A stretch of 64,000 bases of DNA from Sminthopsis crassicaudata. Lineage: Eukaryota. The notes under the pieces were generated by a model, which did no database searches, was not told where the DNA came from, and saw nothing but the letters and a program-made list of their open reading frames with translations. The translations under genes were made by a program, and so were the position numbers. Below, in pieces: positions 15,801-53,702 of the stretch. The DNA lies in contig NC_133622.1 of NCBI RefSeq assembly GCF_048593235.1, forward strand, positions 193,161,198 through 193,225,197. The letters run 5' to 3'. Each line of letters opens with the position of its first letter. Position 1 is the first letter of the stretch.

Positions 15801-18800
15801 ATTTGTATGCTTGTCCTTCCTGCCATCAGATCATAAGCTTATTCAGAATGGGACACTATACACTACATGGATGACACCATTTGGGGAGCTCTCCAGACCC
15901 CCTTTGTGTTTGCTTTGTCCAAGTAATGTTGTTTCCTTAATTTTGTGTGAATTGAACTGAGCAGATAAAGAAGCCCAGAAATCTTGCCTGAGTGATACTT
16001 GAGATAGAACCTTTTGTGATATGATAGAGAAAGATGGATGGAATCTTACTATAGAATGGCTGGCTTGTGTAAGCCATGGATATATTTAGAGTGATATGCT
16101 TTGGGATCTGGAAAGACCTATTCTACTTCCCCAAGGGAGACTTCAATTTCCACCATTGTGGAAAGGAGAAGGACCAGTAACCTATCAGAGAAGGGTATGC
16201 AGCCTTCAGAACAGCTATCACTTCATGCTTAGTCCTTCTCAGACCTATCCCCAAGGAGGATATTGGGTTAAAAGTATATTTATATGTAGCAGCTCAAATA
16301 GTAAGTCTAAAACCATAGAGCTCATTTAGTGGTCCAGAATAAAAGTCCCTTACCCTGATAACTCTGAGTGGGAAGTAGTCTCACTTTGACCAGGAGGTCA
16401 TAGCTTATTTTTGCCAGCTTCCCTTCTTCCCACAAATGCTAGTTCCAGAAAAGGCAATTACAAATAGCAAGAAATCATATTTATCAGAATATGAAATAAA
16501 AAACAATGAAGTTACAAAGGTAATAACAATAATAATAAGCACAACAGCTAGCATTTGTATAGCTCTTTAAGGTTTGCAAAACACTTATTTTTTTCTCACA
16601 ACAATCCTGATGCTATTATTATCCCCATTTTACAGATGAGACTGAGAAAGGTTAAGTGATTTGCCCAGACTTTTTCACTAATAATCTAGTAAGTCTGAGG
16701 CCAGATTTTAATTCAGATCTTCCTGACTCTACACTTAGTCCTGTCTGTACTGTGCTACTACCCCCACTATGTCCCTTCCATCCTAGCACATGAACTTCAG
16801 AGACCATTAAGAGCTGATTTCCCTGGTAACATTGTTCTCTTCTTGGCTGAGTTGGAAGTTTTATCTAATCTTCAACCTGGAAGTCAAATAAAAGGAGAAA
16901 GCCCTATTACCAGCAGCCTCTGGGGTTTCATGAGCTGGGAATCAAGAGACATCCCAGGATGGGGCCTGAAGCTCTGAGGAGGGAGCCTGTCCACATTCAC
17001 AAGTTTGTACCTTGCCTTTCTCTCATGTCCCTCAAACTCCCTTTTCTCCCTCCTTCCACATAGTCAGTATACGTTACTCTACTTTACTCAACCTTCCTTC
17101 TCACCAAACCCGCCTCCTTGAGGGTCCCTCACATAGCCCAGCTCCAAGTCTGGAACAACCCACTCCTCCCTATCTTCTCTTAGAGTCCCTGGTTTTCTTC
17201 AGCCCTCAACTCACGCCCACCTACTGCACGGGGCTCTTCCCAGTCCCCCTCCCCAGTGCGCCCACTGCCCAGAGTGGTCCCATGTTTCTTCCGTTCATAC
17301 TTCTGTGTATATGAGCTACCACCTTGTGTAGAATGGAAGCTATTTGAGGTTGTAGGCTTATTTTTGTTTTCTTGCTTTTGTCATATCCCTGGTGCTTAGC
17401 AGAGTGCTCAGGTAGGCCCTAAGCCTCTTGGTATCAATGAGCACTCTTATTTAAGCTTAGTGACTCTTCCAGCCTGTTGTTCTGCATTTAATAAGTGCAT
17501 TTGTTGCCAGTATAGGCTGCCAAGGGGCATGGGGCTTCCTTGGCAGGGCCGTGCAGGCTCTCAGGCAGGGCCTGAGCCCTCATGGCACCTACTTGGATTT
17601 GGGCCCATTTGGGATAGACTCGGATGCCCCAGAATGTTCCTTCTTCCCTGCTGTTCTCTTGTCTCAGGGCTCTAGAATCCAGCGGGGTCTGCGAGTCGGT
17701 GACATATGGACTCCCATTCATCATCAGGCCGACAAGCTGTTGGCAGCTAGACTGGGATGAGCTAGACACCAACCAGCAGCGTTTCCATGCCCTGTGTCAC
17801 AGCCTGCAGGTAAGTTCCTGTGTCACTGGGTGGCAAGAAGTGGAATACCAAAGTACCAGCCACAAGTAGGCATGAGCCCCAAATCCACACCAGCCCCCCC
17901 TGCTATAACTAACATGGGACAAAGGGGTCTCTGCCCCAGGGTGTTACTGAGGAGGAAGGGTGAGAAGAGATGCATTCCCTGGGGTGATTACAGCCCAAGA
18001 TCCTCTGTCATCCTGTTCTACTCTAATCTACCACACACTCACCCCCAAGCCATGACACTCTCCTCTCTTACAGAAACTATCAGTATGACTCCCTCCCCAG
18101 CTCCCAAGCGGACTCTACTGGTTTTGCTTTTTGTTTTGTGATGATATTCCTAGTTAGAGCTCTACAGCCCTCACTCCATCACCCCCTTGTGCACACACAC
18201 CCCGGTTCAGCCGAGTGTCCCCCTGGAGGTAAGGAGAAACTCTTCCATCTAGGGCAGTTCTAGGGTTCTCTGTGAGACTCAGAGTCCCCAGGAATCAGTG
18301 GCAGGCCACTTGGAAACCCCTAGTTAGTCAAACCAAGCTTTCGAGATCCAGGTAGCAACAGAGGCAGCAAACTGGGCAACAAAAGGCCAGAGGCAAGAAA
18401 AGATGGTCCATATCCCCCTGCAAGATTCTCTATGGAGTGGAAGTAAAGAAGGTATACAACAAAACTAAGGTACTAACACTGGGAAAGAAGCACTAAAAGA
18501 GTGCTAAACAGGTGAGTCCAGATCAGAGGGTGCAAGTGATGAGAAAAGGACTTTCAGAGGAGACAAGTATGNNNNNNNNNNNNNNNNNNNNNNNNNNNNN
18601 NNNNNNNNNNNNNNNNNNNNNNNNNNNNNNNNNNNNNNNNNNNNNNNNNNNNNNNNNNNNNNNNNNNNNNNNNNNNNNNNNNNNNNNNNNNNNNNNNNNN
18701 NNNNNNNNNNNNNNNNNNNNNNNAGGGTGGGGGAAGAGAGATAAAGAGAGGAAGGAAGGCACCTGAACTAACTGTTAGTGTTGGAAGAAGAACATTTTAT

Positions 18801-21800: not shown

Positions 21801-24800
21801 ATAGCTGTATATCCTACGTGCCTCAATTTTCCCAACTGCAAAATGGGGATGATAATAACACCTATCTTCCAGAGTTGTTGTAAAGCACTTAGTGCAATGT
21901 CTGACATGTAATAAGTGCCACGTAAATGTTAGCTACTATTGTTATTGTTATTGTACTCTTCCAGAAGAGCCACAGCTATGGCAGTTCCTTCTCCACTTCT
22001 ATTGCCTGCTGAAGTGGAAATGGGCCTGAGTTTCTGTAGGTAATTATTTCATCTTTGGGCCTTCTCCATCGTTTCTTCCTCATCTAAACTCTTCTCCCTT
22101 CTCTGAACACTGTAACTTATCAGTGGATCCCAGAACTAAACACAGTCTTCAAAATGTGGTCAGACAAAATTCAGTATAATTTTGAATATATTTGCCATAT
22201 TGTAGATTCCTATAAAGTACAAGAACTAAAAGCCCTGGGACTTTTTCTCATAAACTTCAATAAAATTTCTCCCTATTCTATTCTTGGGCAAATGTTCATA
22301 TTTATCTCTCTACTCCCTCCATTGAAGGTTTTCTCTGGTACTTCATTATGGCAGAAAGGTCAGTCAAGCATTTAGTAAGTGTTTATTGAGCCAGATAGCC
22401 AAGCTATGTTCTGGGCATATAAAGAATGACCAAAACAGAATCCTCGCCTGAGTGGACATTCTCAAGAGCTCTGGCAGGTTTCATCAAGCTGGAAAAACTA
22501 TGAGTACAAGCTCAGAAGTGAATTGTGCCCCAGTCACCCAAGAGCAACCCAGCAAGGCAAAAAGCAGCTCATCAATAGGCTAAGCACCAAAGAATTTGGA
22601 GGGTAAAGGAAGGTGCCATTACAATGCACCAAAGGAGCTGAGGAAGCCATGCACCCCACTCAATTAAAACAAAGCTTTACCAAGTACCTACTATGTACAA
22701 GGCACTGTAGAGTAAGCCTCAAATCTGAAAGTTCCTGCCCTCCAGGAAGATGCACTCTTCTGGTGCTCAGAGTACTGAAAGAAGCTTTACATTTCTTTTT
22801 GCAGGATTCAGTCCCTAATTCCAAACTCTTGACATCATTTTATTTCATCCTATCATTCTTTATATTACTGTTCTCTGAGTGTCTGTCTGTGTCATTCTCT
22901 ATNNNNNNNNNNNNNNNNNNNNNNNNNNNNNNNNNNNNNNNNNNNNNNNNNNNNNNNNNNNNNNNNNNNNNNNNNNNNNNNNNNNNNNNNNNNNNNNNNN
23001 NNNNNNNNNNNNNNNNNNNNNNNNNNNNNNNNNNNNNNNNNNNNNNNNNNNNNNNNNNNNNNNNNNNNNNNNNNNNNNNNNNNNNNNNNNNNNNNNNNNN
23101 NNNNNNNNNNNNNNNNNNNNNNNNNNNNNNNNNNNNNNNNNNNNNNNNNNNNNNNNNNNNNNNNNNNNNNNNNNNNNNNNNNNNNNNNNNNNNNNNNNNN
23201 NNNNNNNNNNNNNNNNNNNNNNNNNNNNNNNNNNNNNNNNNNNNNNNNNNNNNNNNNNNNNNNNNNNNNNNNNNNNNNNNNNNNNNNNNNNNNNNNNNNN
23301 NNNNNNNNNNNNNNNNNNNNNNNNNNNNNNNNNNNNNNNNNNNNNNNNNNNNNNNNNNNNNNNNNNNNNNNNNNNNNNNNNNNNNNNNNNNNNNNNNNNN
23401 NNNNNNNNNNNNNNNNNNNNNNNNNNNNNNNNNNNNNNNNNNNNNNNNNNNNNNNNNNNNNNNNNNNNNNNNNNNNNNNNNNNNNNNNNNNNTTGCTTCA
23501 GGTGTATTGGTTATGCCTTTTGCCCCTTCAGAATTTTTTTTACTTCTTTCTAACTGTTTCCTTCATCCTCTCTAAGAAACCAGAGTGTGAAAAAGACTTT
23601 ACTTGAGATTTTTCTGGCATAAAAACCAGCTGCCTTTACAGCAGATATATTTGGTGATCATCTCTTAACCAAAATAAATAACTAAATAAATTGTTGAAAT
23701 CCTACAAGTTGTATGTGGCAGTTTTCTTGATGCCCTTTGCCATTTCTGTTTCCATTTTGGATTCCTGGAAGGGCCATTTTTAAGCCCTTCAGGCCTTCTC
23801 TTTGCTGCTTACTGCTAACCTCCAAAAGCATCATGGCCTCCTAGCTACAGCACACACACAACACTTAATAGAAGTCTCCATTCATCTCTCAGATTTCCCT
23901 TCCATGGAGTATAAGGCAATATATACCATATTCATAGAATTATGAAAGGTCAGAATCCTAGAATTTCAGAGCGGAAAGGGCCCTCAGAGAAAATTTAATT
24001 CAAGTAATACCTGAATAGGAAGACATCCCTTCTAATACCTCCCAAAAGTGGGCATCCAGCTCCCAAGGACCTGGAAGGAACATTGGAGGAATGGCTTCAT
24101 TTTTGCAGATGGAAAGAACCAGGCCAAGAAAAGAGAAGTCATTTGCTTAAGAATATGCCACGGGTTTGGGGCTGAGCTAGAAACCAAAATGACATTTCCT
24201 CTCAGTTGCTGGAGAATTTTTTTCTGTCACAGATTTACTTTTAACCCGCCTGGTTTTTGACGTTCCTATTTTGTTCTTCCTATTGTCTTGTCTTTTGGCT
24301 TGAGCCACTCTGTTGAATAAATCACAAACATCCAACATTTACCAAGAGCTTAAGCATGGGTGATACAAATGAAAAAGGGAGACAGCTTCTACCCTTTAAG
24401 AGCTTACTTTCTGATGGATAGACCACTCATGTGAGCAGAGAAGGATAGAATCATCCTTTTGAAAAGAGGAGCATTTTGGGATGTGAGTGGCTCTGATGTA
24501 TGCTACATGTGCGATATGGCACATCCTCATCACGCATCCCAACCAGGCTTTGATGAGGGGAAAAGAAATGACCTTGTCCAAGAGTGACAAAATTTCTCCT
24601 GCTCAATGCCAGGGTAAGAGTGGCCTTTGTCTCCCTGCTACTTTCAGCCGACCCTGTTTGTGGCCTATAGTATTAAGATTTCAGGGCAGCCAAGGACAAG
24701 GGTAAAGTTGAGCATGTTTTTGTATGTGTTCTTATTTTAGAAAAGAGAGTGGCTGCTGTTGGCCAAAGGAGAACCTGCAAGCCCAGGATCCAGCGAGAAT

Positions 24801-35123: not shown

Positions 35124-37010
35124 TGCACTACTGTTCAGTGTCTGTGCGAGCTACATGCTTTCCCAAAACCGCAGGGGGTGCCTGATGGAAGAAGGCAGGG
35201 ATCTTGGGGGATGGGCGAAGGAAAGAAGTTCGAGAAGTGAAAAGAAGGCTTCTCCAAGTCCAAAGCCAGGGGCTTCGCCCCACACGGGCCCCCGCGTGTC
35301 CTCCAGCCCCAGCCAGCCAGGGAAGAAAGCTTCATTGAGCCCGAGCGGCCAGGGGAGGAGGGGGAGGCGAGGCTGGGGCCTGGCTGGCCAGGGAGGGGGA
35401 GGGACGGACTGAGTGGTACGGTGGGAGGGATTGAGGGAGGGGCGTCCACTCTCCCAGGGCCCGGCACTTTCTTGGAAGTCCAGGATTAAGCTCCGAGGCC
35501 AGGGCTGAAGTCCCCCCATCCCATTCCTTCGGAGGCAACTTCCAGCCCAGAGGTAGGAGCGCTTGGAGAGAGGGAAACAAAACAAACAAACAGGGAAAGG
35601 AAGAATGAGGGGGGCTGAGAGGGTGGACCATGATCACTGGGAAAGAAGTGGGAGCGCATGGAGCTTGGGGGGCAGCGGGGGATGGGATTTAGAAAGATGG
35701 GAGCCGGGGGAGGGGTGTAGGAAAGCGAGGGGTGTTCGGGAAAGTGAAGGGGGATATAGGAGAGTGCAGGAAATGGGGGACTCAGGTAATGAGGATGAAG
35801 AAACAAACAGGAGGGCGCTGGAGGCAGGAAAGGTGGGGTTCATGAACGTAGGATGGGGGACAGGAGGCACAGAGGGCTTAGGGGGATGAAGATAATGGAT
35901 ATCTGAAGATGTTCAGACCTTCTGTTATTGGTCCCTCTGACACATAGAGGAGTCTTTTGATGACCAGTGCAGGGGAAGTGGGGGAGAGGGAAAGGTCAAA
36001 GGGGACCAGCCTGGCCAGGAGCAAGGAATGTGGCAGCCCGGGGAGGGGATAAGGACAGCGTCTGAGGGTCGGGCAGGGTAGGAGGCCAGCAGGGTGGAAA
36101 GGGAAAAAGAGGACAGCAGTTTGTGCTGGGAGTCTGGCCCAGAAAAGTCAAAGTTTCCATAGAGGGCTGGAGGGGAGGGAGAGGAGAAGGCTAGAGCTGA
36201 GATGGGGGTTGGGGGAGAGGGCGTGAGGGCAGGGAGAGGGGATGTGACAGGGTCTGGTTTGCTCCCACCAAAGACTCCTCTACAGGAGAGGGAAATGCCC
36301 CAAAGTCAGCTGCTCCTATCCTATCCCATCCCCCGGGGACCGGGCCAGTCTCTCTGGCCTAGTCTCTGTTGCCTCAGTAACAGCTTGGACCTTAGCACTC
36401 CTTCTTTCTCCTTTCCTCCCTCCTTCCCAGTGGCTCCCACTGCCCCGCCCCATCCACTCAACCCTGGTCCCTCTGGGTCCCCATGCTCCCCTGGGACAGG
36501 TAGCCAAGGAGCCTGAGTGTCACTGGGTGACACCATCCATGTTTCCTGTGTCACTGTCAACATCCTCTTTACTGGTGTGGGTAGCAGCTGTGTGTGATCC
36601 ATGGACTAAAATTATGATGGATGCCTGTGTGTACATGTGTGTGTAAAAGGGCGTGAATTGTGTGCAGCAGGTATGTTTCTCCCACCCTCTCCTGCACATG
36701 GAGCTATAAAGACCTGCTTTCAGTCTCCCAAAATAGAAACCTGGCTCATTGATTTCTCACTATTCTTCTTCCATCATTTGCACACTCTCTAGGCTAGTTA
36801 ATGTCTGTCATTCCTCATCGGGTGAGTTCACAGGGCATCTCCTTCCCTCCCTCTCTCACCGGGTCTCTCCGAGTTACTCTGTGGCTCGTTTTCTGTCTCT
36901 CTGTGTTATTAAAGCTGTTATGTCTCTCATTCTCTTAGCCCAGGTCTCCACTCTCTATCTCGTCACCATCTCACTATAACTAAAGTCTGGGTTTCTATTT
37001 CTCTTAGACC

Positions 37011-40000
37011 ATGTCTGACACAAAGCTTGCTGGGGGCCAGCAGTGGGCCCTTTGGGGGATGCTTCTGTGTGTGCTATGTACCTGGTGCCTGGGAGCCCCC
37101 TCTCCATCCCCAAGCCCTGCAGCAAGCCCTGGCAGCAAGCTTCGTTTCCGCCTCGCTGGTTTCCCTCGGAAGCACTACGAGGGCCGTGTGGAAATACAGC
37201 GGGCTGGCGAGTGGGGTACCATCTGTGATGATGACTTCACCCTGCAAGCGGCTCATGTGCTATGCCGGGAGCTGGGCTTTACCGAAGCCACGGGATGGGC
37301 CCATAGTGCCAAGTATGGCCCGGGCACAGGTGAGAACAAGCACCAAGAAAGCTCACGGAACAGGGAAATGGCACCAAATCCAGCTGAGGCTTCAGGTTTA
37401 GGAAGACCTGGAAAAAGATGGTTGGAGAGATGTTGTTGGAGGTGGGGGAGAGGAGAGGTTGAGCAAATAAGTAATATATTGACAAAGTCCAAAAAAAAAG
37501 TGATTGGGCCAAATATAATGCAATAAATTGTAATCAATATCAATGTAAGATCAGACTTAGATTCAAAAAATCAACTGTAAATCAACCATACTTCCCTGAG
37601 AGAAATGAGCAGATAAACAATTCCTAAATTAATGATCTGCAAGTTCTATAGGTCAAATAAAAAAGGTAAAGTGATTGAAGGGCAACATCAATGGAATGAG
37701 GAAGGAGTTATTGGTACCCTTGTCCTCTGCTCACGTCAAACCTTCCCTGGCAGATTGTATCCACTTCTCTAAGGATAATGATAAGCACATCCAGAGGAAA
37801 AATAAACATACAAAATGAAGTGTAATTGGAAATTGAAGCAACATGGTACTCATCCTAGAGAGCATTAGTTCTGAAATCAGAGGACATGGGTTCAGATTCT
37901 ACTACTCATTTGAGCAAATCACAACTTCCTTGGACCTCAGTTTCTTTATTTGTAGAATGAGATGGCTTCTGAAGTTTCTTTCAATTCTAGATTTATGGTC
38001 CTAGGGAAGGAGAAAGCTTACTTATTGGAACATGGAAATACTTTAGATTCCTTGACAAATGGTCATGCTGCCTTTTTTTTTTTTTTTTTTTTTTTTTGAA
38101 AACTCCCATGGACAGGAAACTTACCATGGCATGAGTTCTGATTGTTGGAAATTTATTTTGTGAACCCCAATTTCAGACTATAACTTTGCTTCCAATTTCA
38201 GAGGCTGTTAGACATAAACACCTTCAACTGTCCTCCATTCCCCCAAAATAATACCTCTTTCTTTTTCCAATACTTAGGTCTCTTGTAATCTTAAAAAACA
38301 ATTTTCCCTTGCTCACACCACCCTCTCAAAATATGACCCCATATCTGTCTCCTTCCCTTAACTGTAAAACTTCTAGAAAGAGACTTTAACTCAACTTCTT
38401 GCTCAGCACACTTAAAATCTGGCTTCTCTCCTAAGACTACTTGGTGAGTCTCTTCAAGGCCACCACCAATGACCTTTTAATTGCCAATTCTAAAAGCCTT
38501 TCCTCAGTTTTCTTCCTCCTTGACCATTCTGCAATCTCTGAAAGGCAGGATTGAACTTAGAGTCAAGAAAACCCTTGCCTTCTCCAACATTTCCTCGATG
38601 TATGGCAAGTCATTTTAACCTCTGCTTTTCTTGATGTCTGTGAATATTTAGCATATGGAAGACAAATTAGATTCATGATCTCCAAAGGGCAGAACTCAAT
38701 ACAACAAGTAGAAGTTACAGGGAGAGAGATTGCAGCTCAAATAGCACTTTCCTAACAATCTGAACTGCTCAAAACCAACTAAATAAATCCTAATGGGCTT
38801 CTTCAGGAAGCAGTGAGCTTCCATATATTCAGAAGTCCTGAAGAGAAGTCCTCCCAGAAGGAGGAAGCTATAGAAAGGATTGCTATGCTGAGAGGGAGTT
38901 GAGACAGCCTATTTCATTTTGGAATTTGATTTAATTATTTCATATTTTCCCCAGTTATATTTAAAACAATGCTTTGTGGTTTTTTTTTTACGTTTGCTTT
39001 TAAAATTTTTTGAGTTCTGTTTCTTTCCTTTATCCCCACCCCCAATTAAAAACCACTTGTGAGGTTATGCAAAACATTTCCATAAAAGTCAAGACAGCAT
39101 ATTTCTAAGGTCTCTCCCAACTCTGAGATTTTTTAACTCTAGCTTGGAAAAAGAGCATGTCAAAATAGGGCCAGATGTTACATGAGTGGGGCTGAATGGG
39201 AAGGGAAATCAGACTTAGGGGGTGACCAGTGCCCAGGGATTTAGTGCTGCTTCTTAAAAAAAAACTTTGGACCAGATCAGATGCGAGTCCTCATTCTAGA
39301 TCTTCCCCTAAATCATCTTATGACTTTGAGAAAGTCACTTTGCCTCTCTGAACTTTAGTTTCCCCTTCTGGAAAAAACAAAATCGTTTGACTCGGTGGTT
39401 TCTAATTTTCCATCACATGAAATTGTATGATTCAGTGTGATTTCGGCTCATTCAAAATGAACCTGGTCCCACCAAGGCCCTTCTGCATTACCTGGGTAAT
39501 CACCATAGGTTTCCAATGTCTCCCATCCTCTTCCTTCCCTTCTGGCTCCCCACAACTAACAGTAGAACATTCATTTAATTAACTCAGAAGGTCATTAATG
39601 GCCCAGGATGCAGCTCCTTATCTGCCAAGGCCCTGAGCCTCTCCTTCCTTACCTGTAAATTAGCGGGGTGGGACTCTAAAACCCCAAGCTCTGCCATTCC
39701 CTGCCAACATCCCCATTGCCACCTTCACCACCATCTATCTCTGTGCTCCCTCTCACTCCCTCCTGTCCCGCTCCCCAAGGCCGAATCTGGCTGGACAACC
39801 TGAACTGCAGAGGAACAGAGCGAAGTGTGAGCGAGTGTAGTTCTCGGGGCTGGGGCAACAGCGACTGCACCCACGATGAGGACGCTGGCGTTGTGTGCAA
39901 GGATCAGCGCCTTCCCGGCTTCTCCGATTCCAACATCATTGAGGTTGGTGGGTACATGGGCAAAAACACAGCTTTTGCACAAACACTTATACATGTGGCA

Positions 40001-43000
40001 GCCAGGGAGCGAAAGCTCGACTTTGAGTCAGAGACATGAATTCAAATCCTGCTTCTGACACTTACTAGTCTTGGGATCCCAAGCGAATCACTACTAAGCC
40101 TCTGTCTTGCCTCATTTTTCTCATGTGTAAAATGGTGATAATTATAGTGTCTACTTCCCAAGATTTTTGTGAGGATAAGATAATATTTATTTGTTTTTTT
40201 AATTTAATTTTACTCTATTTTTACAAGGATCCAAAATGAGCTGATATTCAAAAAGTAAAATCTTTTGCAAGCTGTAAAGCGCCATATCAATGCTAGCTAT
40301 TATTATTATATACGGACATCTGAGAGCTGGAGAAGCTATGGGGATCGTGGAGCAGTTGTTCAGTCACCTCCAACTCTTTGTGACCCCACTTAGGGATTCC
40401 TAAGCCAAGATGCGGAGTCATTTGCCATTTCCTTCTCCAGCTCATTTTACAGATGAGGAAACTGAGGCAAAGTCATACAGCTGAGTTTGAACTCAGGTCA
40501 GTCTTCCTGACTCCAGGGCTGGCACTTGTCGCCACTGCGCCACCTACCTGGGACAAGTAGTGTGTAATATCCTAGGGAAGGCAGCCTGTTTTAGTGGAAA
40601 GAGTTGGGGAGTTTGACAGAGGATCTATAATCTGGGCTCTGCTGCTTCCTTTGTAGCCATTTAACCAATCTGAGTCTCAGGTCTCTTCCACCCCCAAGAT
40701 TTCTTCCAGTTCGGGATCCAATCATCTGTCACTGCTTCGCCTTTTTTATTTTCTTTCCATTTTTTTTTAATGATAGGATTAGATTTTCTATAGAAACTTT
40801 GACTTATTATTATGTGAAAAAAAGATTTTTGTGTCAAGTACCTCCAGGGGGATATAGGGGACTGGAGAGTTATATGATTTAAATAAATCCTAACATCATG
40901 TGAGACCTCAGTTTCCTCATCTGTAAAATGGAGAGAATGGAAGATGATCCCTAAGGTCCCTTCTAGTTCTCAATCTTAAGGTCTTTAGGTAAATGAGAGA
41001 ATGAGAATGAGGAGTTTCCCCGAGGCCTTCTGATTCTGTGATCCTTTGAGCCCCTGAGATGTGTTTGTGTGACCTGTGCCATCCTCTTCCCAGGTGGAGG
41101 AGCAGCATTTGCAGGTGGAAGAGGTTCGTCTGAAGTCAGCTGTGGGAGGGGGCCGTCGGCCACTGCCTGTCACGGAGGGGCTGGTTGAGGTCCGGCTTCC
41201 TGGGGGGTGGGCCCAGGTGTGTGACCAAGGATGGAGTGCCCATAACAGCCGAGTGATCTGCGGGATGCTGGGCTTCCCCAGCGAGCGGAGAGTGAATGCT
41301 GCCTTCTACAGGTAAGAGAGTCCGGGTGGGACAAGGGATGGGAGGAAGGGGATCCCAGTGTGAGGTAAGAAGGGGTCTGAGCTATGAAGTGTGAATGGGT
41401 GGCTGAGGTTTGAGATGTCGAGAACTGAATTTCAGGGCTTGATGGAGTGCGGGTAGGAGCAGATCTGGGGTTTGATGGCTGTGAAAAGCACCTTGGCATG
41501 AAATTCTAGGTGTGAGGGTCCAGGGTTTGAGGAATGGAGTATTCTGAGTTTTGAGGTACAGGGGGGCAGAGGCTAAGTTTGGGGAGTATGATGAGATGAC
41601 TGTACTGCCAGATGCCAGGAGCTCTGAAGGCTTGAGGTAACATAAGTCTGAAGAGCAAAAATATAAAAATTGTGGGTTCTGGGATACCGAGGTCTGAACT
41701 ATGAGGCAGAAATGGGGATGTGAGGGGAAAAGATGTTGCAAGCACCGGGATGGGGAGTGGGAACTCGGGGATGGCGAGGGGGTTGGAGAATGGAGCATAG
41801 GAAAAGAGTAGGGTGGGGGTGGGGCCTTTTTTGGTGGGTGGGGTTTGCTGTAATGGGGCGGGCCTTCCCCATGGGGTTGATCTGAGCCTTTCCATGTCTT
41901 AATGTAGGTGACATCATCTAGAGCTAGGCAGATTCTTTTGATTGCTCTGCCCCAGGCTACTTTTTCTGATGCTCTCAAACTAGGGCCAGAGAGGGCGAGA
42001 TCTGGAAAGGCTTCCAGAAGAATGGGTATTTGTTCTCTGTGGAATATAATGACTCTCCCGGATTTGTCAGTCCCCCGGAGCCGAGTAAGAACTGGAAGAA
42101 ACCTTAGTCATCTAATCTGACTCTATTTTATAAATAAAGAAACTGATAGTAAGTGACCAAGTTAGGGTTCCTTAGCCTGTTAATAAGCACTTATTAAATG
42201 CCTATTTACGTGCCCTACACTGTGCTAAGCACTGAAGTTACATGATAGGCAGTGACAAAGCCAGGATTCGAACCCATTTCCTCAGCCACCAGATCCAAGT
42301 CCTGTTAACAAGCACTTATTAAAGGCCTATTTACGTGCCCTACTAAGTGCTGAAGTTACAAAGAAAGGCTGAAGTTACAAAGAAAGGCTGAAGTTACAAA
42401 GAAAGGGAAGACAATATACCAAAAAGATCCAGACAAGCTGAATTGGCATGATCTCCTAGATAAAGCACTGAGGCTAAGGTAGTCAGAAAAGACTTCTGGC
42501 AGAGGACGGCATTTTGAGACTAGAAAGAAGCCAGGGCAGCAAGAGGAGGAGAGGAGGAAGAGGAAGGTTTCGGGCTTGGGAAACAGCCTGGAGTAGGAAC
42601 TAGATTTGTTTGGAATAGGACGGAGACTCACAGAGTCAGGACAGAAGAATAACCTGTAAGATTAGAAAGTTAGACAGGAACCAAATTGTGGTCCTAAGTA
42701 TTATGGCCCTAAGTGTTTTCTGTTTGATTCTGGAAGTGATTGGGAACCGCTGAGTTCATAAAATGGGTTGGTCATAGTGACATGGTCAGACCTGTGATTT
42801 AGGAAGGTCTGTTTGGCAGCTGAATAGAGGGTAAACTGTAATAGGACAAAATGAGGAAGGGAAATGAACCAGAAGATGATCGTAATCGGTCAAGCATTTG
42901 GTTGTGAGGACCTGTGCCAGAGCAGTGGCAGTGCCAGGAGAAAGAAGGAAATGCAGGAGAGATGTTCCAAGGGTAGGCAGGCAACTTGGCAACTATTTGT

Positions 43001-46000
43001 ATACGGGACCGAGAAAGAAGAGTTCAGGACGACCGCTAGACTCGGAGACTGTGTGACTGGGAGGAGGATGATACCCTTGAAAGACATTGAGAAATTACCA
43101 AGAAGGGAGCTTTTAGATGAAAGAGAATGAGTTCAGATTTGCACATATTGAGCACAAGATGTCAATGAGACATCTCATTCAAGAATTTTACTTGCTAGAG
43201 ATGCAAGACAGGAGAGGGGCTAGGACTAGATAAATAGATCTGAGCATCATGGACATAGAGAATTGAATCTATGGGAGCTGATGAGTTCACCTAGAGAAAT
43301 AGTATAGAGGGAGAGGAGAAGAGGGCACAGGATGGAGCCTAACTCTTGGTTAGATCCAGGTTGTTTCCATTGTACCGAATACATTATTTTGTTGTTCCAT
43401 CATTTCAGTTATGTCCAACTCTTCATGACCCTATTTCAGGTTTTCTTATGCTAGAATGGTTTGCCACTTCTTTCTCTGGTTCATTTTACAGATAAGGAAA
43501 CTGAGGCAAACAAGGATAAGGGAGTTACCTAGCATTGCAGGGATAGGAAGTTATCTGAGCCCATATTTGAACTCAAGAATACTCATTTTCCTGACGTCAG
43601 AGCCTGGGCATTCTATCCATTTTGCCACCTCACTGTTCCAATGCATTATTTAGGAGATCCTTAGATCCTTATTGAATTCAATTGGATTTGTAGGATTTCA
43701 GCAGGATTTTAGGATGAGTGAGGATGTGGAATGAGCAAAGGCTTGATAAAGATTTGGAGCAGATCAGAAGTTTGTCTGGGGTTTGTATTCATCTTTCTAT
43801 AGAGTCTCAGAGACTTGGATTCAACAAACGAATTCATATAACCTCCACACTGGGTTTACCAGAGAGCTTGGAATCTTTGTGTTCCAAAATCTTCCATAAG
43901 GCAATATGGCACAGTGTGAAAAGGGTGGGATTGGAAGGTTTGGATGACCAAAAAGTGGGCAAGTCCCTTCCTCAGTCTCCTCAACTGTAAAATACAAGGG
44001 AATTGAACTAGATATCTAAAAAGTCCTTTCCATCTCTAAATTTATGATTCTAAATGTAGTAAAGAAGATTAAAAACACACATGAAACAATGAGATAGTTA
44101 AGGATTGCAATGTAGAAGACCATGTGATCCAGCCTTTCATTCAACAGAGGGAAACCAAGGCTCAGAGAGACGGAAAGGCCTTTTCCAAAGTCACATTGAT
44201 AATTTAACAACAGAATCAAGACTGAAATCTACAAAGACCTAGATCACTATAAGACTACAAGAAATATTTAATAATAGAGATGAAGATATAATGCCGTAAA
44301 AACTAGAAATGAAGAGCAATGAAGAAATAGTTCTTTTGGGGGAGAAAGTATTCAGAATAGTTAGTGCTGAGCTTGTCTTATTTAACATATAATGATAAGT
44401 GCCTCAAAAGACAGATGTGAGCTCAATATAAACAAAAAACTTTATATTTATATTTATTATTATATCTTATTTAGAGACTCACTCCATATAAAATGGAGCT
44501 CAATATAAAGGAAAAGCTTTATATTTATATTATATTTTATTTATACACCCTGAAGTGTATAAAATGAACCATGCTAGGGGAGGGAGCAGAGTAAGAAGGG
44601 ACTGAACTTCCCTCTCGAGGAATGCTGTAGAGAGAGTGTGAGCTGGATAAGCTGGATTCCTCCAATTCTGAGATTCTCATAGGAATCACATATTTAGAGT
44701 TGGAAGGAACCTTAGAAATCTCTAATAGTCTGGCCTTCTCATTTTGTCGTTGAGAAAACCGAGACCTGAAAAGGAAAATAGGTCTTACAGAAAAGTATTC
44801 AAACTGAGGCACCCCAGCACCAAAGCCAGCACTCTTTCTAATGAGACCATATTGGAGGCCACAGCAATTTTTCAGGAAGGAATGAGGCAGGGAATTCTTC
44901 CCAACACCTCTTCTCAGACTGTGTATTCTAAGTCATTTGATGATAATGTATTCAAGGGGAAATGTTCCAAAGCATGTTTATGGGATGGGGAGCAAGGGGT
45001 CCCAGCTTTTTGCAGTATAGCTTAGGAAGAAGAACTAAGGATCACCACTAATGGTTCCCCTCAAATCCTGAGGCAATTGTGGCTACTGCTCTTTCCTATG
45101 GAGCAGAATGTCCAGGGAGGGAATAGCCACGAAAGGTGAATTGGCCAAAAGGTATGTTGACCATGAAAGAGCATGAAAATGGTTAATGAAGCTTCGTGGT
45201 TAATAATTGGAAGTAACTAAAGTTTAGGGCCTAAATCCCAGCCACTAGGAACTCCTTCAGGGTGAAGAAAGTAAATTCAACTTAAGTACTAACTATGGAC
45301 AGGGTCAAGATTAAAAATACAGTCCCTGCCTTGGAGTTTATAATCCAATACAGAAGGTTTTACAAATCATAACATACCAAAAGAACCAGAGTGACAAAAG
45401 AGATCACTTTTAGCAGGGAGATCACCGAAGACTTCATAGAGGAGGTGCCGACCCCAATACATTTTGAGAGAAGGAATGGACTTCAGTAGGCAGAAATTTG
45501 GTGCTGCATTCATTCTATGCATAGTAGGGGTGCAGGATGTGGGAAAACATTGTTACAGAAACAGAAAAAAATAGGACAGAAAATAGTCCAGTGTGGATGG
45601 GATTTAGAATTGTGAATTTGGTTCAAGGATCCAACAAATTATTAAGTACCAAGTGCTGGGGATATACACATAAAGACAGTTAATTCTTGCCCTTACAAAG
45701 CTTCCGTTCTACTAGGTGGGAAACATGTATACAAATAAGTAGATACAAAGTTTATATGATGTAATACTTAGTAATTTCAGGAGAGAAAGAGATTGCCTGT
45801 ACCAGCAGCCAGGAGGATCAGAATACATGTTCCATAGGAAGTGCTACCTTTCCAGGGAAGCTTGGGATGTCAAGTGGCAGAAGTGAAGGCATTCCAGGCG
45901 TAGGAGGAGACATCTTTGCCAAAGCAGAGTAGGAAGATAACTTTCCATGCACGGTGTAGAAAGTATATGAGAGTGACATGAGATAGAGCTAGAGAGGTAG

Positions 46001-49000
46001 GCAGGAGTTAGCTTGAAGAGGGCCTTGAATGCCAGCCCAAGGAGTTTCTATTGGCAATAAGAAACTACTGAAGGTTTTTTAGGCTGACATAAGTCAGATC
46101 TGTGCATTATCCAGGTGGTTTTGTTCCTGTGTGAAGGAGAAGCTAGTAGTAGAAAATAGTAGCCCAGGTAAGATAGGACAGACTAAGGATGTAATATGGA
46201 GGGACCAACGTGGCCATTGATTGGGGACTGAAATGAACCAAAGCGTCCGCCTAATCCCAAAGTGTAGGTGACTGGAAAGATAGCAGTGGTTATGGTGGAT
46301 GGACATTGGGAGGTGGGGCCCGCTGGGAATCAGGGGAAGATGAAGAGTTGGAGTTGACACATTGAGCTTGGGCCAGTAAAAAAGGAAGCAGACCCTTGAC
46401 CTCACTCCGTGGGAGCTGCTCCAAGCTGGGGCTAGGAAAGGGGTGAATGGAGTATTTAGGGCCTCCCTGCTACTGCTCCCATCCCCTCCAGTGTTCTGGC
46501 TTCGTCTGCCTCGGCCCCGAGACAGCTTTATGCTTTTGCATTCCCTTCTTGGCGATGAGCCCCGGGTCTGGCGGAGGGCCGAGAAGAGAGGTCAGCTGGA
46601 TTAGCCCACGCTTGGGCCTGACCAGCTCCAACAGCCTGGCTGTGGGCCAGATCACATGGTTCCCTCCGTGGCCAACTTCTGAATTCCTGGGCTTGACACC
46701 CCACCCCATTTCCGCCATGGTCATGGGCTGAGTAATTGAGATTCTTGGGACAGACACTATCAAAAATAGTGTGTCCATAGTGTGTCCATAAGCTGAATGG
46801 AGACTCTTGGCTCCCATCCTGCCTGCTAGTCTCTGTCGTCCTAAGGCAAAGATCCTGTCCCGAGTCTTTAAATGGACAGGGTCAAGATTAAAAATACAGT
46901 TCCTGCCTTGGAGTTTATAATCCAATACAGAGGGTTTTACAAATCATAACATACCAAAAGAACCAGAATGACTGAAGAGATCGCTCTTAGCAGAGAGATC
47001 ACGGAAGACTTCATAGAGGAGGTGCCGACCCCAATGCATTTTGGGATCTCCATCTCCTGCCTTTTCCACTTTTTCCAGGTGTTCATATCTAACTTTGAGC
47101 TATGAGGATCTGTCTCTGATGTCTTAGCTGGTTGGGGAGTTAGAAAGAAAAAGGATAGGGCAGGAGACAAGAGATCCCCTAAGCCCTTGGGGAAATTTTT
47201 CTCGTTCCTGACCTTGACTGGCCCTCTAGCCAGGTCCTGGGCTCCAGGCTTGTCCCTTACTCCAGTGTTCTCTTGTCCACACAGACGGTTAAGGAAACGG
47301 GCAGCCAAGGCCTCTGCCCAACGCCGTGGGTCTCGTAGCAGGTAACAGGGCAGGAGGGGGTTGACCTCTGGCTGAATCCAGGGGCCTCCTGATCCTCCCT
47401 GTGGCTCCAGGAACTGGAAGGAACCTGTCTGTCCTTTCCAGATCCCAGGGTAGTGAATCGGGGTGTGGCCAAAGAGGGTCAAACATGGGGACAGGTGGAA
47501 GAAATACTCCCTTCTGCTCCCCTTGGCAACCCTGGATTTGAACCCTCAGCTCCCAGCTCCACCAGCCTCGATTCATACTCGCTCCCCTTTACCCTCCCCT
47601 CTTTTCCAGCCTTTCCCTTCACTTCTTTCCCATGGCTCTGCCTAAATTCAGCCACCCTTTCCCTCTTCCCTGATATAATCAGGCATCTCCAGTGGGGTAG
47701 CATGGACCCCTGGAGCCCTGCTCAACATGGCCACAGAGGGGTCAGTGTGCCCCAGCTCCCTGACTGCTTTTCCAGACTGCCTGCCTTCCTCATCCCTTCT
47801 CTCCCGCTGTCCTCTCTTTCTGAGGAACAGAACAGAAAAGACAAGGGATCTGATGTCCCCTGACCCTTCCTGATCCCCTTCTGCTTCTCTTCCGCCTCCC
47901 TCCATGTCTATCTCCTTTTTCCAGGCCAGTCACCAAGTTTAAAGCCAAACACAAACCCCGTGCAGGCCAGGGGCCCAAAAAGAGGTAAATGAAGAACTGG
48001 ACGGTGAAAAGGACGCAGAGGCCCTGAGAGCCCACTGGTCGAGCAGGGGACCCAGGGACCTAGCTGCTTGGGAGCCAGGGGAAAGGGGGAGGGCTTCAGG
48101 GACCGGGGATCTCCAAAGTCCGGTCGTATCTGCTTCATTCTGCGCCCACCCCGGTGATGTTTGCCTAAGTGACCAGTGACCCCCATCCTTTATCATTTAT
48201 TTCTTCAGCATAGCTGCTGTGGAGAGGAAATTCAGGATTCTGTCTGAAACCTCATCAGAAAGCAGCAGTCACTTAGCTTCCTAGTACAGTAGCACGTAGA
48301 ACAGAAGGCTGTGTGACTTGGTCCTGTCTTTCCCCTTCGTTACGTTAGAACTCTGGGGGACTGCTGCCTATTTCTTAGGCCCAATAATAACAATTCCACT
48401 CTCATTTATACACCAAGCAGTCCTTGCATTATCTTGCTGGTTCTCACCACAGTTCTGAGGAAGAGAAGTAGCCGGCAGGACAAAGATGGTGACCCCCATT
48501 TTACAGCCCTCAGAGCAGGAAAGCAATTTGCCTAAGATCCTAAAGGTAGTGATAGACCGGATAGGTCTAAATGCCAGCCCAGAGTTCATCCCTCTGCACC
48601 ACCTGCCCTGTCTAACTCCAGAACAAACCCCTGCACCCCAGGGCTTCCAGAGACAACCTGGACATGGGAATCTCTCTGCTTGGTCAGTGAAGACCAAGGG
48701 GAACATTCATTACTCTATTCTTTTTCCATCTTGAGCCAGGGATCACAAAATAATCCTCCAAGCATCTTTCAGCAGCGTCTGGTTGGAAGAACTTGAGCTT
48801 GCCTCTTTAAGCTCTGCTTTTTTGGGATTCCTTTTTGATGTCTCCCTTGCCATGAACAGGTCCCAAAAGGACTTCTCTTTCTTCTCTGGGATAAGACCAT
48901 TTCCAAGACCCCCAACATTGCCTGCTCCTTTGGAGCCTTGACACTCTTTATTCTGGGCTTCTTGTATGAAATGTTCACACACACACACACACACACACAC

Positions 49001-52000
49001 ACATTTTGTTTTCTTCCCAGCCTCCTCTTATTCTCGTACCCATCTTCACAGGCAGTGTTTCTGCCAGTGCCCATCCTGTCCTAACTACTACTCAATAACT
49101 AGGAAGGTGGTTTTTCCTGCTTTCCCCCGGTGTGACCTGGACCACTTAGCAAGATCCTGCCAGGCTCCTTCCTTTGTGGTGCTGGGGCCTGCTGCTCCAT
49201 GAGCAGACACACTTCTCTTGTCCACAAATGCTTTGACTGGCCATTTTATGGAATCTTTCTCCGGTGGTGTTTTTGAGATGCATGGAGCGATCTCTCCTGA
49301 GACTCCATTGCATATCACCAATCCAGGTGCATAATTGTGTCCTAACTTCCCATCACCCTCCCTCTTTTCTGACCTTCTCACGGTCTGTTCCCCCGACACC
49401 CACCCCCCCCCCCCCCCGCTACTGCCTGGATATCTCTCCCATATTGGCTCCTCATGATCTTTCCCTCGATCTTTACTTGTCTGGACCCAGCTTCCCGTTC
49501 TGCCCTAGAGCAGCCTCTGTCCTTTCAAATATAATATTCACTGACACTTATGTAGTGCCTTAAGGTGTGCAAAGTGTTTTACCATCTCATTTGATCCTCT
49601 CCACAAGTAGGAGGTGAGTATCATAGGTATAATTATCAGCCTTTTAATGGATAAAGAGACAAGCCTAGAGAGGTTAAGTCCCTCGTTCCTACTCGAAAAC
49701 TGGCAGAATCTGAATCCAAGGCTCTCCTGGTGCCCAGCAGCTGGCATTAATGTTGTATTTTAAGGTTTAAATGTAGCGCACACTCATTATTTCAGTTGAT
49801 TCTGGGAGAAAAGAACTCCCAATAGCACTCTTCCTATTTTATAAAAGGAAACAGGATTGGGGAGTCATAGGTAACTTTTTCCTGGTCACACAACTATTAA
49901 GTTGCCGAGGGCCAGAATTCATTTTCAAGCCTGTGCTCTCCCTCCGGTCCCATCACTTTCCACATCTCTGTGGCTTATTTCCATGGCTGGTGTCCGCGTG
50001 GGCCAGCTGGGCCTCCTGTTTAAGCCGAGGGGTGCATAACCTCATGGGCCCGGCCCACGGCTCTTTCTGCTTATCGGCCTTCATCATATTCCAAGGCAGC
50101 TGGGGGAGGGGGGGGAGCATGGATTAGGGGTCAAGGTTGCAATGAGCTGTCTTCTCCTCCCTCTGTCTAGAGGCTCTCCCATCTTCTCACCCTAAAACCC
50201 GCCTTTTTTGGAAACATCATTGTCTCCTGCATCTCTTGCGACTCCCGCTCTGAGAAAGAGATGGGAGGTTAAGGAAGGGATGGCGAGGGGAAAATGACAG
50301 GAGCTGGGAAGGGGATGAGGATGGGACGCCAGACTCGGGGACCCATCCTGCTCCTTCCCCTGTCCCCAGGCTGCTGGCCCAGCGCCAACGTCACTCCTTT
50401 GGTCTGCATGGAGTGGTATGTGTGGGCACTGAGGCTCACCTCTCCCTCTGCCCCCTGGAATTCTATCGTGGCAATGACACTGCCCGGTGCCTGGGGGGGG
50501 CACCCGCTGTGGTGAGCTGTGTGCCAGGCTCTCTTTACGCCACAGCCAGCGGCCAGAAAAAGAAGCAGTCATCGACACAACCTCGGGGAGAGGTGTGTGT
50601 GACCCAAGAGGAGGGAAGTCCCCCACCCCCTTCCTGACCAACCCAGCACCCCCCCCCCCAGGGATTGTGAGACCCTGCAGATACCTTCCTCCCCGCCCGA
50701 CCCCTAAGGCAGAGACGGCAATCCCTTTGGGCTGCTCCCAATGCCTTCCCCCCACTTGTCCCAAATTAGGTGCCTGCCCCCTGTCCCTGTTAACGTTCTC
50801 TGCATGTCTCTGTCTCTTTTCAGCCCCGGCTTCGCTTGAAGGGCGGGGCTCGGCCGGGTGAGGGCCGGGTGGAGGTCCTGAAGGGGGGTGAGTGGGGCAC
50901 CGTCTGCGACCACAAGTGGGACCTGCAGTCGGCCAGCGTTCTGTGCCGTGAACTGGGCTTTGGGAGTGCCCGAGAGGCCCTGAGCGGCGCCCGAATGGGA
51001 CAGGGTGAGCCAAGGGCGGAATGGAGGGAGGATGTGCCTTAGGAAAAGAGCCGCTGTGGAGCTGGGAGCCGTGGTGAGCCCCCTGACCTCTGTCCCCTGA
51101 CCCAGGTATGGGCCCCATCCACCTGAGTGAGGTGCGCTGCTCAGGGCGGGAAGCCTCTCTCTGGAGCTGCCCGTACAAGAACATCACCGCCGAGGACTGC
51201 TCCCACGCCCAGGACGCCGCTGTCCGCTGCAATCTGCCCTACACTGGGGTTGAGACCACGGTCAGCCTGGTCCCCTGTGTCTCTCACTGATGCATCCTTC
51301 CCTCCCCACCTCCAACCCCTTTCCTTCATCTCTGTGCTCCCAAGAACTCACCACACCCCCATCAACCTCCCCTCTGTCCCGCAGATCCGGCTAAGTGGGG
51401 GTCGCAGCCGGTACGAGGGGCGAGTGGAGGTGCAGGTGGGGGGGCCCGGCTCCCCCCGCTGGGGCCTCATCTGTGGAGATGACTGGGGAACACTGGAGGC
51501 TATGGTGGCCTGCCGGCAACTCGGCCTGGGCTACGCCAACCACGGCCTGCAGGTAGGTTTGAGGGAAAGGGGGAAGGTTTTCTCACCACGCTTCCTGCTC
51601 TCTCACCGTCCCCACGTCCCGTTCCAGGAGACGTGGTACTGGGACTCGGGGAACGTCACTGAGCTGGTGCTGAGTGGAGTTCGCTGTACGGGCTCTGAGC
51701 TATCCCTGGGAGAGTGCGCCCACCATGGGACCCACATCACATGCAAGAGGACGGGCACACGCTTCGCTGCTGGTGTCATCTGTTCTGAGAGTGAGGGGGA
51801 ACAGACTGGGGGGGGCTGGCCCAGAACGAGCCCCCTTTCAGGCAGGGCATGGGGAACGTGCGACCCAGGGGGAAGTCTCCAGTGAAAAACCAATACTTAG
51901 CAGACTGGGAGGGGATGCTCCCCCTCCCCAAACTCACAGAAGTCACCTGCCCCTGTAACCTGTGACCTCCCTCCTCTTCCCCCCGACCTTCCCAGCTGCA

Positions 52001-53181
52001 TCAGACTTGATACTACACTCAGCCCTGGTGCAGGAGACTGCTTACATTGAGGATCGACCACTCCACATGCTGTACTGCGCAGCAGAAGAAAACTGTCTGT
52101 CTCGCTCCGCCCGGTCAGCAAACTGGCCCTATGGCCACCGGCGGTTACTCCGCTTCTCCTCCCAGATCCATAACCTTGGCCGAGCTGACTTCAGGCCCAA
52201 GGCCGGCCGACACTCCTGGGTGTGGCATGAGTGCCATGGGTGAGGGAAGGGGGCCTGGCTAAGGAGGGGGAGAGGCTGAGGGTCGGTGGGGGAGGAAAGG
52301 AGGGAGTGTGCTCCATGGGAGCAGGACCTCAAAAGCCTTCACAGTGGAGCAGGACCAGGCCTGCAGGCCCCTGTAAATGCACCCCACAGGCACTACCACA
52401 GCATGGACATCTTTACTCACTATGACATCCTGACGCCCAACGGCACCAAGGTGGCCGAGGGTCACAAGGCCAGTTTCTGTCTGGAGGACACCGAATGTCA
52501 AGAGGGTGAGTCAGTTGTCTGGAAGGGATTCCCCATCTCCCACCCAGAGGTTTGAGGGATTCCTGGTCTGGCTTTCCCTACCTTGGATCTGACTCCCTGC
52601 CTGTGCCTGGGACTTGTGGCAGCTGAGGCCTCCTGGAGCTGCTCCATCCACTCAACTCCCCATCCCCCTAGACGTCTCCAAGCGGTACGAGTGTGCCAAC
52701 TTTGGGGAACAGGGCATCACCGTGGGATGCTGGGATCTTTACCGGCATGACATTGACTGCCAGTGGATAGACATCACAGATGTGAAACCAGGAAACTACA
52801 TCCTGCAGGTGAGGGGAAGAACCCCTGGGCTGTCTAGGGCTGGGCGTGCCAGAAGGGAACTCTGATCCCCGATTCTTTACATCAGGTGGTTATTAACCCC
52901 AACTTTGAAGTGGCGGAGAGTGACTTCACCAACAACGCAATGAAATGTAACTGCAAATACGACGGACACCGCATCTGGGTGCACAACTGCCACATTGGTA
53001 TCAGGGCTGGGCTGAGCAGGGTGGCAAGCCCTTCCCACTTCCGCTCCAGTTCTCCTTTCCCTCTCACCTACCCTCCTGATCCAACCCCACTGCTATTTCC
53101 TTCCCAGGCGATGCTTTCAGTGAAGAGGCCAACAGGAGATTTGAACGCTACCCCGGCCAGGCCAACAACCAAATTGTCTGA
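37011..53181 (+). CDS. LOXL3: Lysyl oxidase-like 3 (signal peptide, 4 SRCR domains, copper amine oxidase domain), 757 aa without the optional cassette exons
   Basis: Coding exons 37011-37329, 39780-39943, 41094-41311, 50370-50592, 50824-51004, 51106-51260, 51385-51552, 51628-51790, 51996-52239, 52390-52505, 52672-52808, 52886-52997 and 53108-53181 total 2274 nt. Cu-binding WHECHGHYH, LTQ Lys (EGHKASF) and Tyr ([14 protein letters not shown]) are intact. Confidence 0.98.
42349..42405. repeat. 19-bp tandem repeat, 3 copies, within a duplicated L2-like tail
   Basis: GCTGAAGTTACAAAGAAAG x3. The preceding AAGCACTTATTAAA.GCCTATTTACGTGCCCTAC block also occurs at about 42185. Confidence 0.85.
45295..45466 (+). 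repeat. 172-bp dispersed direct duplication, copy 1 (L2-like sequence)
   Basis: Matches 46872-47043 with about 10 substitutions by eye and no indels. Confidence 0.9.
46872..47043 (+). repeat. 172-bp dispersed direct duplication, copy 2
   Basis: Matches 45295-45466. Confidence 0.9.
47285..47341 (+). CDS. LOXL3: Candidate LOXL3 cassette exon A (57 nt, phase 2-2), adds [19 protein letters not shown]
   Basis: Acceptor ttctcttgtccacacAG, donor CAG/GTAACA, length divisible by 3, no stop, and same phase as the flanking exon 4/5 junction. Confidence 0.7.
47925..47984 (+). CDS. LOXL3: Candidate LOXL3 cassette exon B (60 nt, phase 2-2), adds [20 protein letters not shown]
   Basis: Long pyrimidine tract ending ttccAG, donor GAG/GTAAAT, length divisible by 3, no stop, phase-compatible. 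Confidence 0.6.
48976..49003. repeat. (CA)14 microsatellite
   Basis: Read directly from the sequence. Confidence 0.95.
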
Positions 53182-53457
53182 GGCCCTGGGTCCACCTGCT
53201 TCCTGGCTCTTCCTGGCACCTCCCCACCCTCAGGGCACTACTGGAACCAGATCTTGGCTTTGGCCAAACTGTTTGGCGCATGGACTAGGAAGGAAGATTC
53301 CCTAACCTTCCACAACTGGATTGGAGCAGAAAAAGCAGCTCTCTACCATGCACACCGATGTCCTGGGGACACAGTCAATACCTCTGATCTTTTGGTTTGG
53401 GGGAGGAATCCATCCTACTCCCCTCACTCTTGGCTACAACATGTCACTAGTTAAAAT

Positions 53458-53479
53458 TTTATTTTATTTTAATTTTATT
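53458..53479 (-). terminator. Cluster of three AATAAA signals for HTRA2
   Basis: TTTATT on + at 53458, 53463 and 53474, about 225-245 nt past the HTRA2 stop. Confidence 0.75.
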
Positions 53480-53702
53480 TTATATAAAATGCTTCTCCTG
53501 TTTCTTTGGCGTGGGTAGGGGGAGGGCCTGCCCTCCCCTGGCTCATTCCCCACCTTGTTCCCCTCCCAAGCTATTCCAGCCTCAAAGAAAAGGAGGTATG
53601 GAGACAGGGCAGGGGCCACACCCTCCCTTCTCCTTCCTTTGGGGGGGGGGGGGAGATAAGCAAGATTACTGTAAAGTTTTTGGGCCCTTCTGTCCATACT
53701 GG

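Follow-up and report, generated by a model that had tools for sequence, protein, structure and literature searches.

Background

In VEGF-A (exons 6/7) and PDGF-A (exon 6), short, basic, acid-poor alternative cassettes confer binding to heparan sulfate or matrix and can make furin-like cleavage possible. The LOXL3 paralogue LOXL2 is cut extracellularly by convertase-type proteases at a basic site between its second and third SRCR domains (SRCR2 and SRCR3), which modulates its behaviour. LOXL3 itself is needed in the development of the palate, spine, eye and muscle-tendon system and is studied in fibrosis and cancer, in work that uses the form of 753 amino acids (aa). Reviews of LOXL3 name only two human splice variants, sv1, from which exons 1-3 and 5 are missing, and sv2, from which exons 4 and 5 are missing; they give 753 aa as the longest form and mention no basic insert (PMC6678131, PMC12619944). 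Here we analysed a window of 64,000 nucleotides (nt) from the dunnart Sminthopsis crassicaudata (RefSeq assembly GCF_048593235.1, contig NC_133622.1, positions 193,161,198 to 193,225,197 of the forward strand), in which the intron between LOXL3 exons 4 and 5 holds two small basic segments, referred to as exons A and B. We conclude, with a probability of roughly 0.88, that A and B are real alternative cassette exons of LOXL3, which are coding, keep the reading frame and have been conserved since ancient times. The exon sequence is not new because both exons are already annotated in public gene models of Sminthopsis crassicaudata.

The locus and the anatomy of exons A and B

The gene was delimited by searching the Sminthopsis LOXL3 X1 protein against the window with tblastn, which gave 96-100% identity per exon. 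Positions 36511-53681 of the window match the X1 genomic locus (GCA_048593235.1, CM109186.1) at 100% over 17171 nt. The relevant parts of the gene are listed below, with a slash marking the exon boundary at each splice site.

37011-53178, + strand: LOXL3 coding region, from the start codon to the last coding exon
41094-41311, + strand: constitutive exon 4, first half of SRCR2; ends in ...AFY + AG (...GCC TTC TAC AG), donor CAG/gtaaga
47285-47341, + strand: cassette exon A, 57 nt, phase 2-2; acceptor ...ttgtccacacag/, donor CAG/gtaaca; encodes R + 18 residues + R, with a conserved R-x-(K or R)-R/AA motif at its start, where the slash is the presumptive cut
47925-47984, + strand: cassette exon B, 60 nt, phase 2-2; acceptor ...ctcctttttccag/, donor GAG/gtaaat; encodes R + 19 residues + R
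50370-50592, + strand: constitutive exon 5, second half of SRCR2; starts G CTG CTG GCC, that is, G + LLAQRQRH

The intron between exons 4 and 5 is 9058 nt long. Because exon 4 ends in AG and exon 5 begins with G, the intron is in phase 2 and the split codon AG/G encodes arginine. Exons A and B, which lie 583 nt apart, have pyrimidine-rich acceptors ending in AG, GT donors and no in-frame stop; the first base of each completes an AG+N codon and each ends in AG. All four splice products (skip, A, B and A+B) are stop-free and continue in frame into LLAQRQRH. Depending on exon choice, 19, 20 or 39 strongly basic residues are inserted, and the A+B insert of the dunnart comprises 39 residues with 17 K/R, no D/E and a net charge of +17. 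A preliminary description of this stretch had given the coordinates, the 2-2 phases, the splice sites and the composition of the insert, and this layout is exact to the base.

We estimated how often such segments arise by chance by listing all intronic AG...GT pairs 27-300 nt in length and scoring them with a rough splice-site matrix of our own making (acceptor ≥8 bits, donor ≥6 bits). Nine pairs scored above the thresholds, three had a length divisible by 3, and the two that were open in the LOXL3 frame were exactly A and B. The expected number of stop-free, frame-keeping pairs is roughly 1-1.5. This slight excess means that sequence alone cannot decide the exon status of A and B, and two pairs in 9 kb barely exceeding expectation is what one would see if they were chance pseudo-exons without conservation or function. 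It is conservation that lifts them above chance: no other orthologous islands in the intron can be aligned, A and B have preserved their frame and splice sites, and we regard the pseudo-exon explanation as refuted. An origin of A and B as duplicates was also ruled out, there being no similarity between them or with the rest of the window.

Conservation in genomic sequence

The conservation analysis used genomic loci, independently of annotation, from ferrets (two species), Mus pahari, sifaka (Propithecus), echidna (Tachyglossus), a parrot and an anole, with the dunnart as the sole marsupial and the sifaka as the sole primate. When the whole dunnart intron was aligned with its orthologues by a blastn-type search, the ferret intron gave just two islands, 47268-47422 (A) and 47907-47994 (B), the mouse intron gave one, at B, and the echidna intron gave A, B and one further match of 27 nt. 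Exon B retains 78-82% nucleotide identity to eutherians, in an intron whose remainder, A apart, is unalignable. By our own dating this conservation spans about 160-180 million years. The additional echidna match (43482-43508, CATTTTACAGATAAGGAAACTGAGGCA) is presumably the core of the MIR short interspersed element (SINE) and was rejected as a third orthologous conserved element for that reason.

The genomic copies of both exons keep the reading frame. Lengths across species are 57/57/57/57/54/90 nt for exon A and 60/60/60/60/66/60 nt for exon B, with all differences being multiples of 3. Neither the copies of A (six species) and B (six species) nor the shark and lizard peptides taken from gene models contain a stop. 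The AG and GT sites persist all the way from marsupial to bird and lizard, echidna exon A being the exception; echidna exon B (66 nt) has both. The Mustela and bird copies of A and B are intact in frame and splice sites. In Mus pahari and Propithecus only the canonical form has been modelled, yet both exons are intact there as well (open frame, AG acceptor, GT donor). Anolis has, besides its modelled exon B, an unannotated A-like exon of 90 nt (RFKRAAKAAPRSQSKNRRKRRPLPPKPSK).

Coding constraint was assessed by the pairwise Nei-Gojobori ratio of nonsynonymous to synonymous substitution rates (dN/dS) between the dunnart and ferret, mouse or echidna. For A+B the ratio is 0.24-0.36. For exon A alone it is 0.12-0.24 against eutherian and monotreme sequences, with changes biased to synonymous ones: across its first 11 codons, six synonymous changes and one conservative Arg/Lys change separate dunnart from ferret. 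A 10-residue core of exon A is invariant across mammals. Outside the convertase-type site at the start of A, A and B keep their charge more than their exact sequence. These patterns point to purifying selection on A and B. The preliminary description had proposed dN/dS and splice-site conservation as the check on its exons, and the orthologues bear it out, with low dN/dS and with frame and AG/GT kept, apart from the echidna A acceptor.

Conservation also reaches beyond the exons into two intronic segments.

47342-47422, + strand: conserved intronic flank 3' of exon A; the island runs to 47399 in the echidna comparison and to 47422 in the ferret comparison; gtaa.ggggca.gag ... cctcc ... ggc.cc.gga
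47907-47924, + strand: conserved polypyrimidine tract and acceptor of exon B, as seen in the alignment; the ferret and mouse blastn islands begin at 47907

The flank downstream of exon A extends for about 60-80 nt and shows invariant blocks in the five-mammal alignment, from monotreme to eutherians, including a G-run beside the donor (gtaa.ggggca.gag). Regulated alternative exons typically have such conserved flanks, and we consider 47342-47422 a candidate intronic splicing enhancer or splicing-regulatory element for exon A. The donor of exon B is conserved in the alignment, too.

The same flank can be read differently. If A and B were conserved non-coding elements (intronic enhancers, or splicing-regulatory or decoy elements) that entered gene models through homology-guided prediction and are rarely or never present in mature mRNA, conservation reaching into the intron 3' of exon A would be expected, and so would the lemur and Mus pahari models that are canonical only despite intact exons. 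What argues against non-coding elements is the manner of the conservation: length differences confined to multiples of 3, freedom from stops, retention of AG/GT from marsupial to bird and lizard, and the synonymous bias of the substitutions in exon A.

Annotated isoforms across vertebrates

LOXL3 homologues were reached from the first coding exon through a primate LOXL3 isoform, the exon 4/5 region of which was then used as the query. The protein clusters searched merge isoforms at 90% identity, and insert variants were read from the cluster member lists. Several vertebrate LOXL3 proteins contain extra residues precisely between ...AFYR and LLAQR..., and the marsupial RefSeq models have lengths of 757, 776/777 and 796 aa. 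For Sminthopsis crassicaudata, isoform X1 (XP_074130331.1, 796 aa) includes an A+B peptide identical at every residue to the one encoded here, and isoform X2 (XP_074130332.1, 777 aa) includes exon B alone. The two are computational models, and gene models are the only source in which inclusion has been seen. Elsewhere the models are distributed as follows.

A+B models: Notamacropus, Mustela, Ovis, Elephas, Artibeus and the bird Neopsephotus
A-only models: Manis, Pteropus, Cricetulus and Canis X3 (exon A with a 12-residue 5' extension)
B-only models: Sarcophilus, Phascolarctos, Monodelphis, Rhinolophus, Globicephala, Loxodonta and Anolis

The preliminary description had called the exons hidden, which does not hold, as X1 and X2 of the same assembly already contain them. 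It fared better on usage. Its proposal of combinatorial splicing into four isoforms agrees with the public models, in which skip, A, B and A+B all occur somewhere in mammals and of which this genome has A+B and B-only. The eutherian KLRKRAAK... insert that it mentioned is indeed present in public models, and exon B, with which its author was unfamiliar, is widespread in eutherians.

Beyond mammals, the parrot (Neopsephotus) A+B peptides are RVKRAAVTRGRSLRPGRR + LASKSQPKQKRREDVGSKKR, and lizards have one or both exons. In the horn shark Heterodontus, a LOXL3B-like gene has isoforms with and without an A-like RFRRRRASVKRARSSAPR at the same junction. Because of this shark cassette, exon A dates at least to the jawed-vertebrate ancestor; exon B dates at least to the amniote ancestor.

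The junction also varies in other ways. Further variants are modelled in Canis, Phyllostomus, cetaceans and Cervus. They include a hydrophobic 12-residue 5' extension of exon A, LILTLLLSYPRR, which arises when an acceptor further upstream is used and the pyrimidine tract is translated in frame. In cetaceans and Cervus, pieces of 15-21 residues are added after B or A (after B in cetaceans). Such variants seem to be confined to particular lineages, and a function is less likely for them.

The models come from several annotation sources, namely XP_ records, KAM records and ab initio entries named "hypothetical protein", which argues against A and B as non-coding elements spread by homology-guided annotation.

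Transcript evidence and points against coding exons

We searched Logan contigs of four presumed RNA runs (X2, X5, X6 and X8) over positions 45000-50650 of the window, leaving aside the repeats at 48968-49015. The preliminary description had named junction counts as a check, and in these four low-depth contig sets one side of it was seen: a single contig of run X8 has the exon 4-5 skip joint, in a loose end before position 50367 where the final 26 nt of exon 4 stand immediately ahead of exon 5, and no inclusion joint was found. Exon B words (3 sampled) occur in many presumed RNA runs of three organisms, where pre-mRNA and mRNA are indistinguishable.

Several observations weigh against A and B as coding exons. 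First, no joint with A or B was detected in the contigs of the four presumed RNA runs, and the contigs over A and B are all unspliced, with flat coverage. Missing A or B joints mean little, because depth is low (word depth 3-8 in three runs and about 22 in run X2), contigs drop minor isoforms, and the constitutive joint was recovered in only one of the four runs. Second, short open reading frames (ORFs) in the database near the junction included no spliced insert fragment, all of them being unspliced exon 4 or exon 5 fragments. Third, the predicted isoforms of the many species are not fully independent of one another, because many may partly rest on protein homology. Fourth, exon B is under weaker protein-level constraint than exon A (dN/dS 0.26-0.55), and its changes show no third-position excess in one pair. 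Finally, echidna exon A lacks the orthologous AG acceptor (...gttgt versus ...cacag in other mammals), with frame and donor kept. In that region (Tachyglossus locus, about 9480-9543), the frame would be preserved by either of two upstream AGs, located 7 and 13 nt before the point where the orthologous exon begins; echidna exon A may use an alternative acceptor or be unused.

The first two of these points would be expected of conserved non-coding elements. Set against the frame, stop and splice-site conservation, the low dN/dS of exon A and the variety of annotation sources, they leave that explanation very improbable, and we prefer to read A and B as coding cassettes of LOXL3.

Position in the protein and possible function

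The insert lies in the middle of SRCR2, inside the domain, because the Pfam SRCR match (PF00530) before it covers profile positions 7-49 of 100 and stops just ahead of the insert, and the sequence after it aligns with the second half of CD163 SRCR domains. More precisely, it falls after the helix cysteine of ...VICGMLGF... and ahead of the cysteine pair that follows in SRCR2. In the SRCR disulfide pattern the two halves of the domain are cross-linked.

Proprotein convertases cut after an Arg at P1 with at least two basic residues among P2/P4/P6 and a P1' residue other than V, L or I. The only site that follows this rule in all nine taxa compared is the start of exon A, which reads RKR/AA in mammals, RVKR/AA in the bird, RFKR/AA in lizards and RRRR/AS in the shark (the slash here marks the predicted cut). 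Exon A could thus supply, at its start, a splice-controlled proprotein-convertase site, a possibility that we put forward tentatively from the motif. The putative site would have Arg at P1, basic residues in at least two of P2, P4 and P6, and Ala-Ala past the cut. Splicing would then set whether LOXL3 can be nicked within SRCR2 in the secretory pathway. Because SRCR disulfides cross-link the two halves, cleavage within the insert would leave a nicked domain and free no fragment, and the halves would probably remain linked.

Alternatively or in addition, the polybasic loop may act as a patch for heparan-sulfate binding, or for matrix or cell-surface retention. The net charge of the insert is +9 to +20 across nine taxa (+14 in the bird). 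The Cardin-Weintraub heparin-type pattern XBBBXXBX is fitted by L-RKR-AA-K-A in all mammals examined; the bird V-KR-AA-V falls outside the strict pattern. By analogy with other basic cassettes, a retention role is also conceivable at below even odds. The convertase and retention readings are about equally likely and mutually compatible.

Two points detract from this functional picture. Mammals have Leu at P4, and their site is for that reason weaker than that of bird, lizards and shark, which is R-x-K-R. The view of the insert as an exposed, disordered loop is drawn from composition and domain position only, as AlphaFold predictions of SRCR2 with the insert (17 and 49 sequences) reached predicted local distance difference test (pLDDT) scores of 37 and 47 and are unusable; a weak helix over exon A in these predictions is unreliable.

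Another possibility is that the exons are real and serve mainly as a nuclear localisation signal for intracellular LOXL3, bipartite-like across the A-B junction. By eye, RR-x10-KAKHK can be picked out in the dunnart peptide and RR-x11-KVKPK in eutherian ones, and nuclear functions of LOXL3 have been reviewed (PMC6678131, PMC12619944). However, LOXL3 is a secreted protein with a signal peptide, and a bipartite signal at human residues 293-311 has already been ascribed to the constitutive protein (PMC6678131, PMC12619944). The pattern (RR, a spacer of 10-11 residues and K.K.K) needs both exons, yet single-cassette isoforms are common, and the RKR/AA core is more conserved than the spacing. We therefore consider a primarily nuclear role improbable. 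For the further suggestion of the preliminary description, that the Lys-rich loop might be a self cross-linking substrate, our analyses yielded no support.

Taken as a whole, the proposal that LOXL3 has a splicing-controlled loop in SRCR2 for convertase cleavage and/or glycosaminoglycan binding, kept since the jawed-vertebrate ancestor and overlooked in the LOX literature, is speculative and rather doubtful in its full form. If it is true, inclusion would switch LOXL3 from a freely diffusing to a nicked or matrix-tethered enzyme, shifting where collagen and elastin are cross-linked.

Other features of the window

The exon 4-5 intron contains both copies of a 172-nt direct repeat (45295-45466 and 46872-47043), which are 94% identical (10 mismatches, 0 gaps), lie about 1.6 kb apart and are probably two copies of an interspersed repeat. 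It also contains a (CA)n/(TG)n-type microsatellite at 48966-49010, which shows as MCVCVCVCV / HTHTHTHTH in translated ORFs. Upstream of LOXL3 there are N runs at 18572-18723 (152 bases) and 22903-23492 (590 bases).

Comparison with known systems

The exons of the RefSeq models X1 and X2 of Sminthopsis crassicaudata are the same as A and B, with no difference. In the searchable literature we did not find the A/B peptide strings or LOXL3 cassette exons, and the function of the inserts appears to be unstudied in the LOXL3 literature searched. That optional exons which add as many as 39 basic residues and a convertase-type site to SRCR2 have persisted for hundreds of millions of years implies isoforms that differ in how they are processed or where they are localised, and neither experiments nor antibodies have taken such isoforms into account. 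The value of this analysis lies in a well-supported lead for the bench and in the record of purifying selection on A and B.

Three described systems come close. LOXL3-sv1 and sv2 resemble the A/B forms in being alternative splice forms of the same gene that involve the SRCR2 region (exons 4 and 5); they differ in that exons are removed and no sequence is added. The cassettes of VEGF-A and PDGF-A are, like A and B, short, alternatively spliced, K/R-rich and acid-poor. They lie at or near the C-terminus of a growth factor, whereas the LOXL3 insert falls within a folded SRCR domain and the protein is an enzyme; no sequence homology is claimed. The paralogue LOXL2 shares with LOXL3 a basic site in the SRCR region. 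In LOXL2 this site is constitutive and located in an inter-domain linker, whereas the candidate site of LOXL3 is optional by splicing and lies inside SRCR2.

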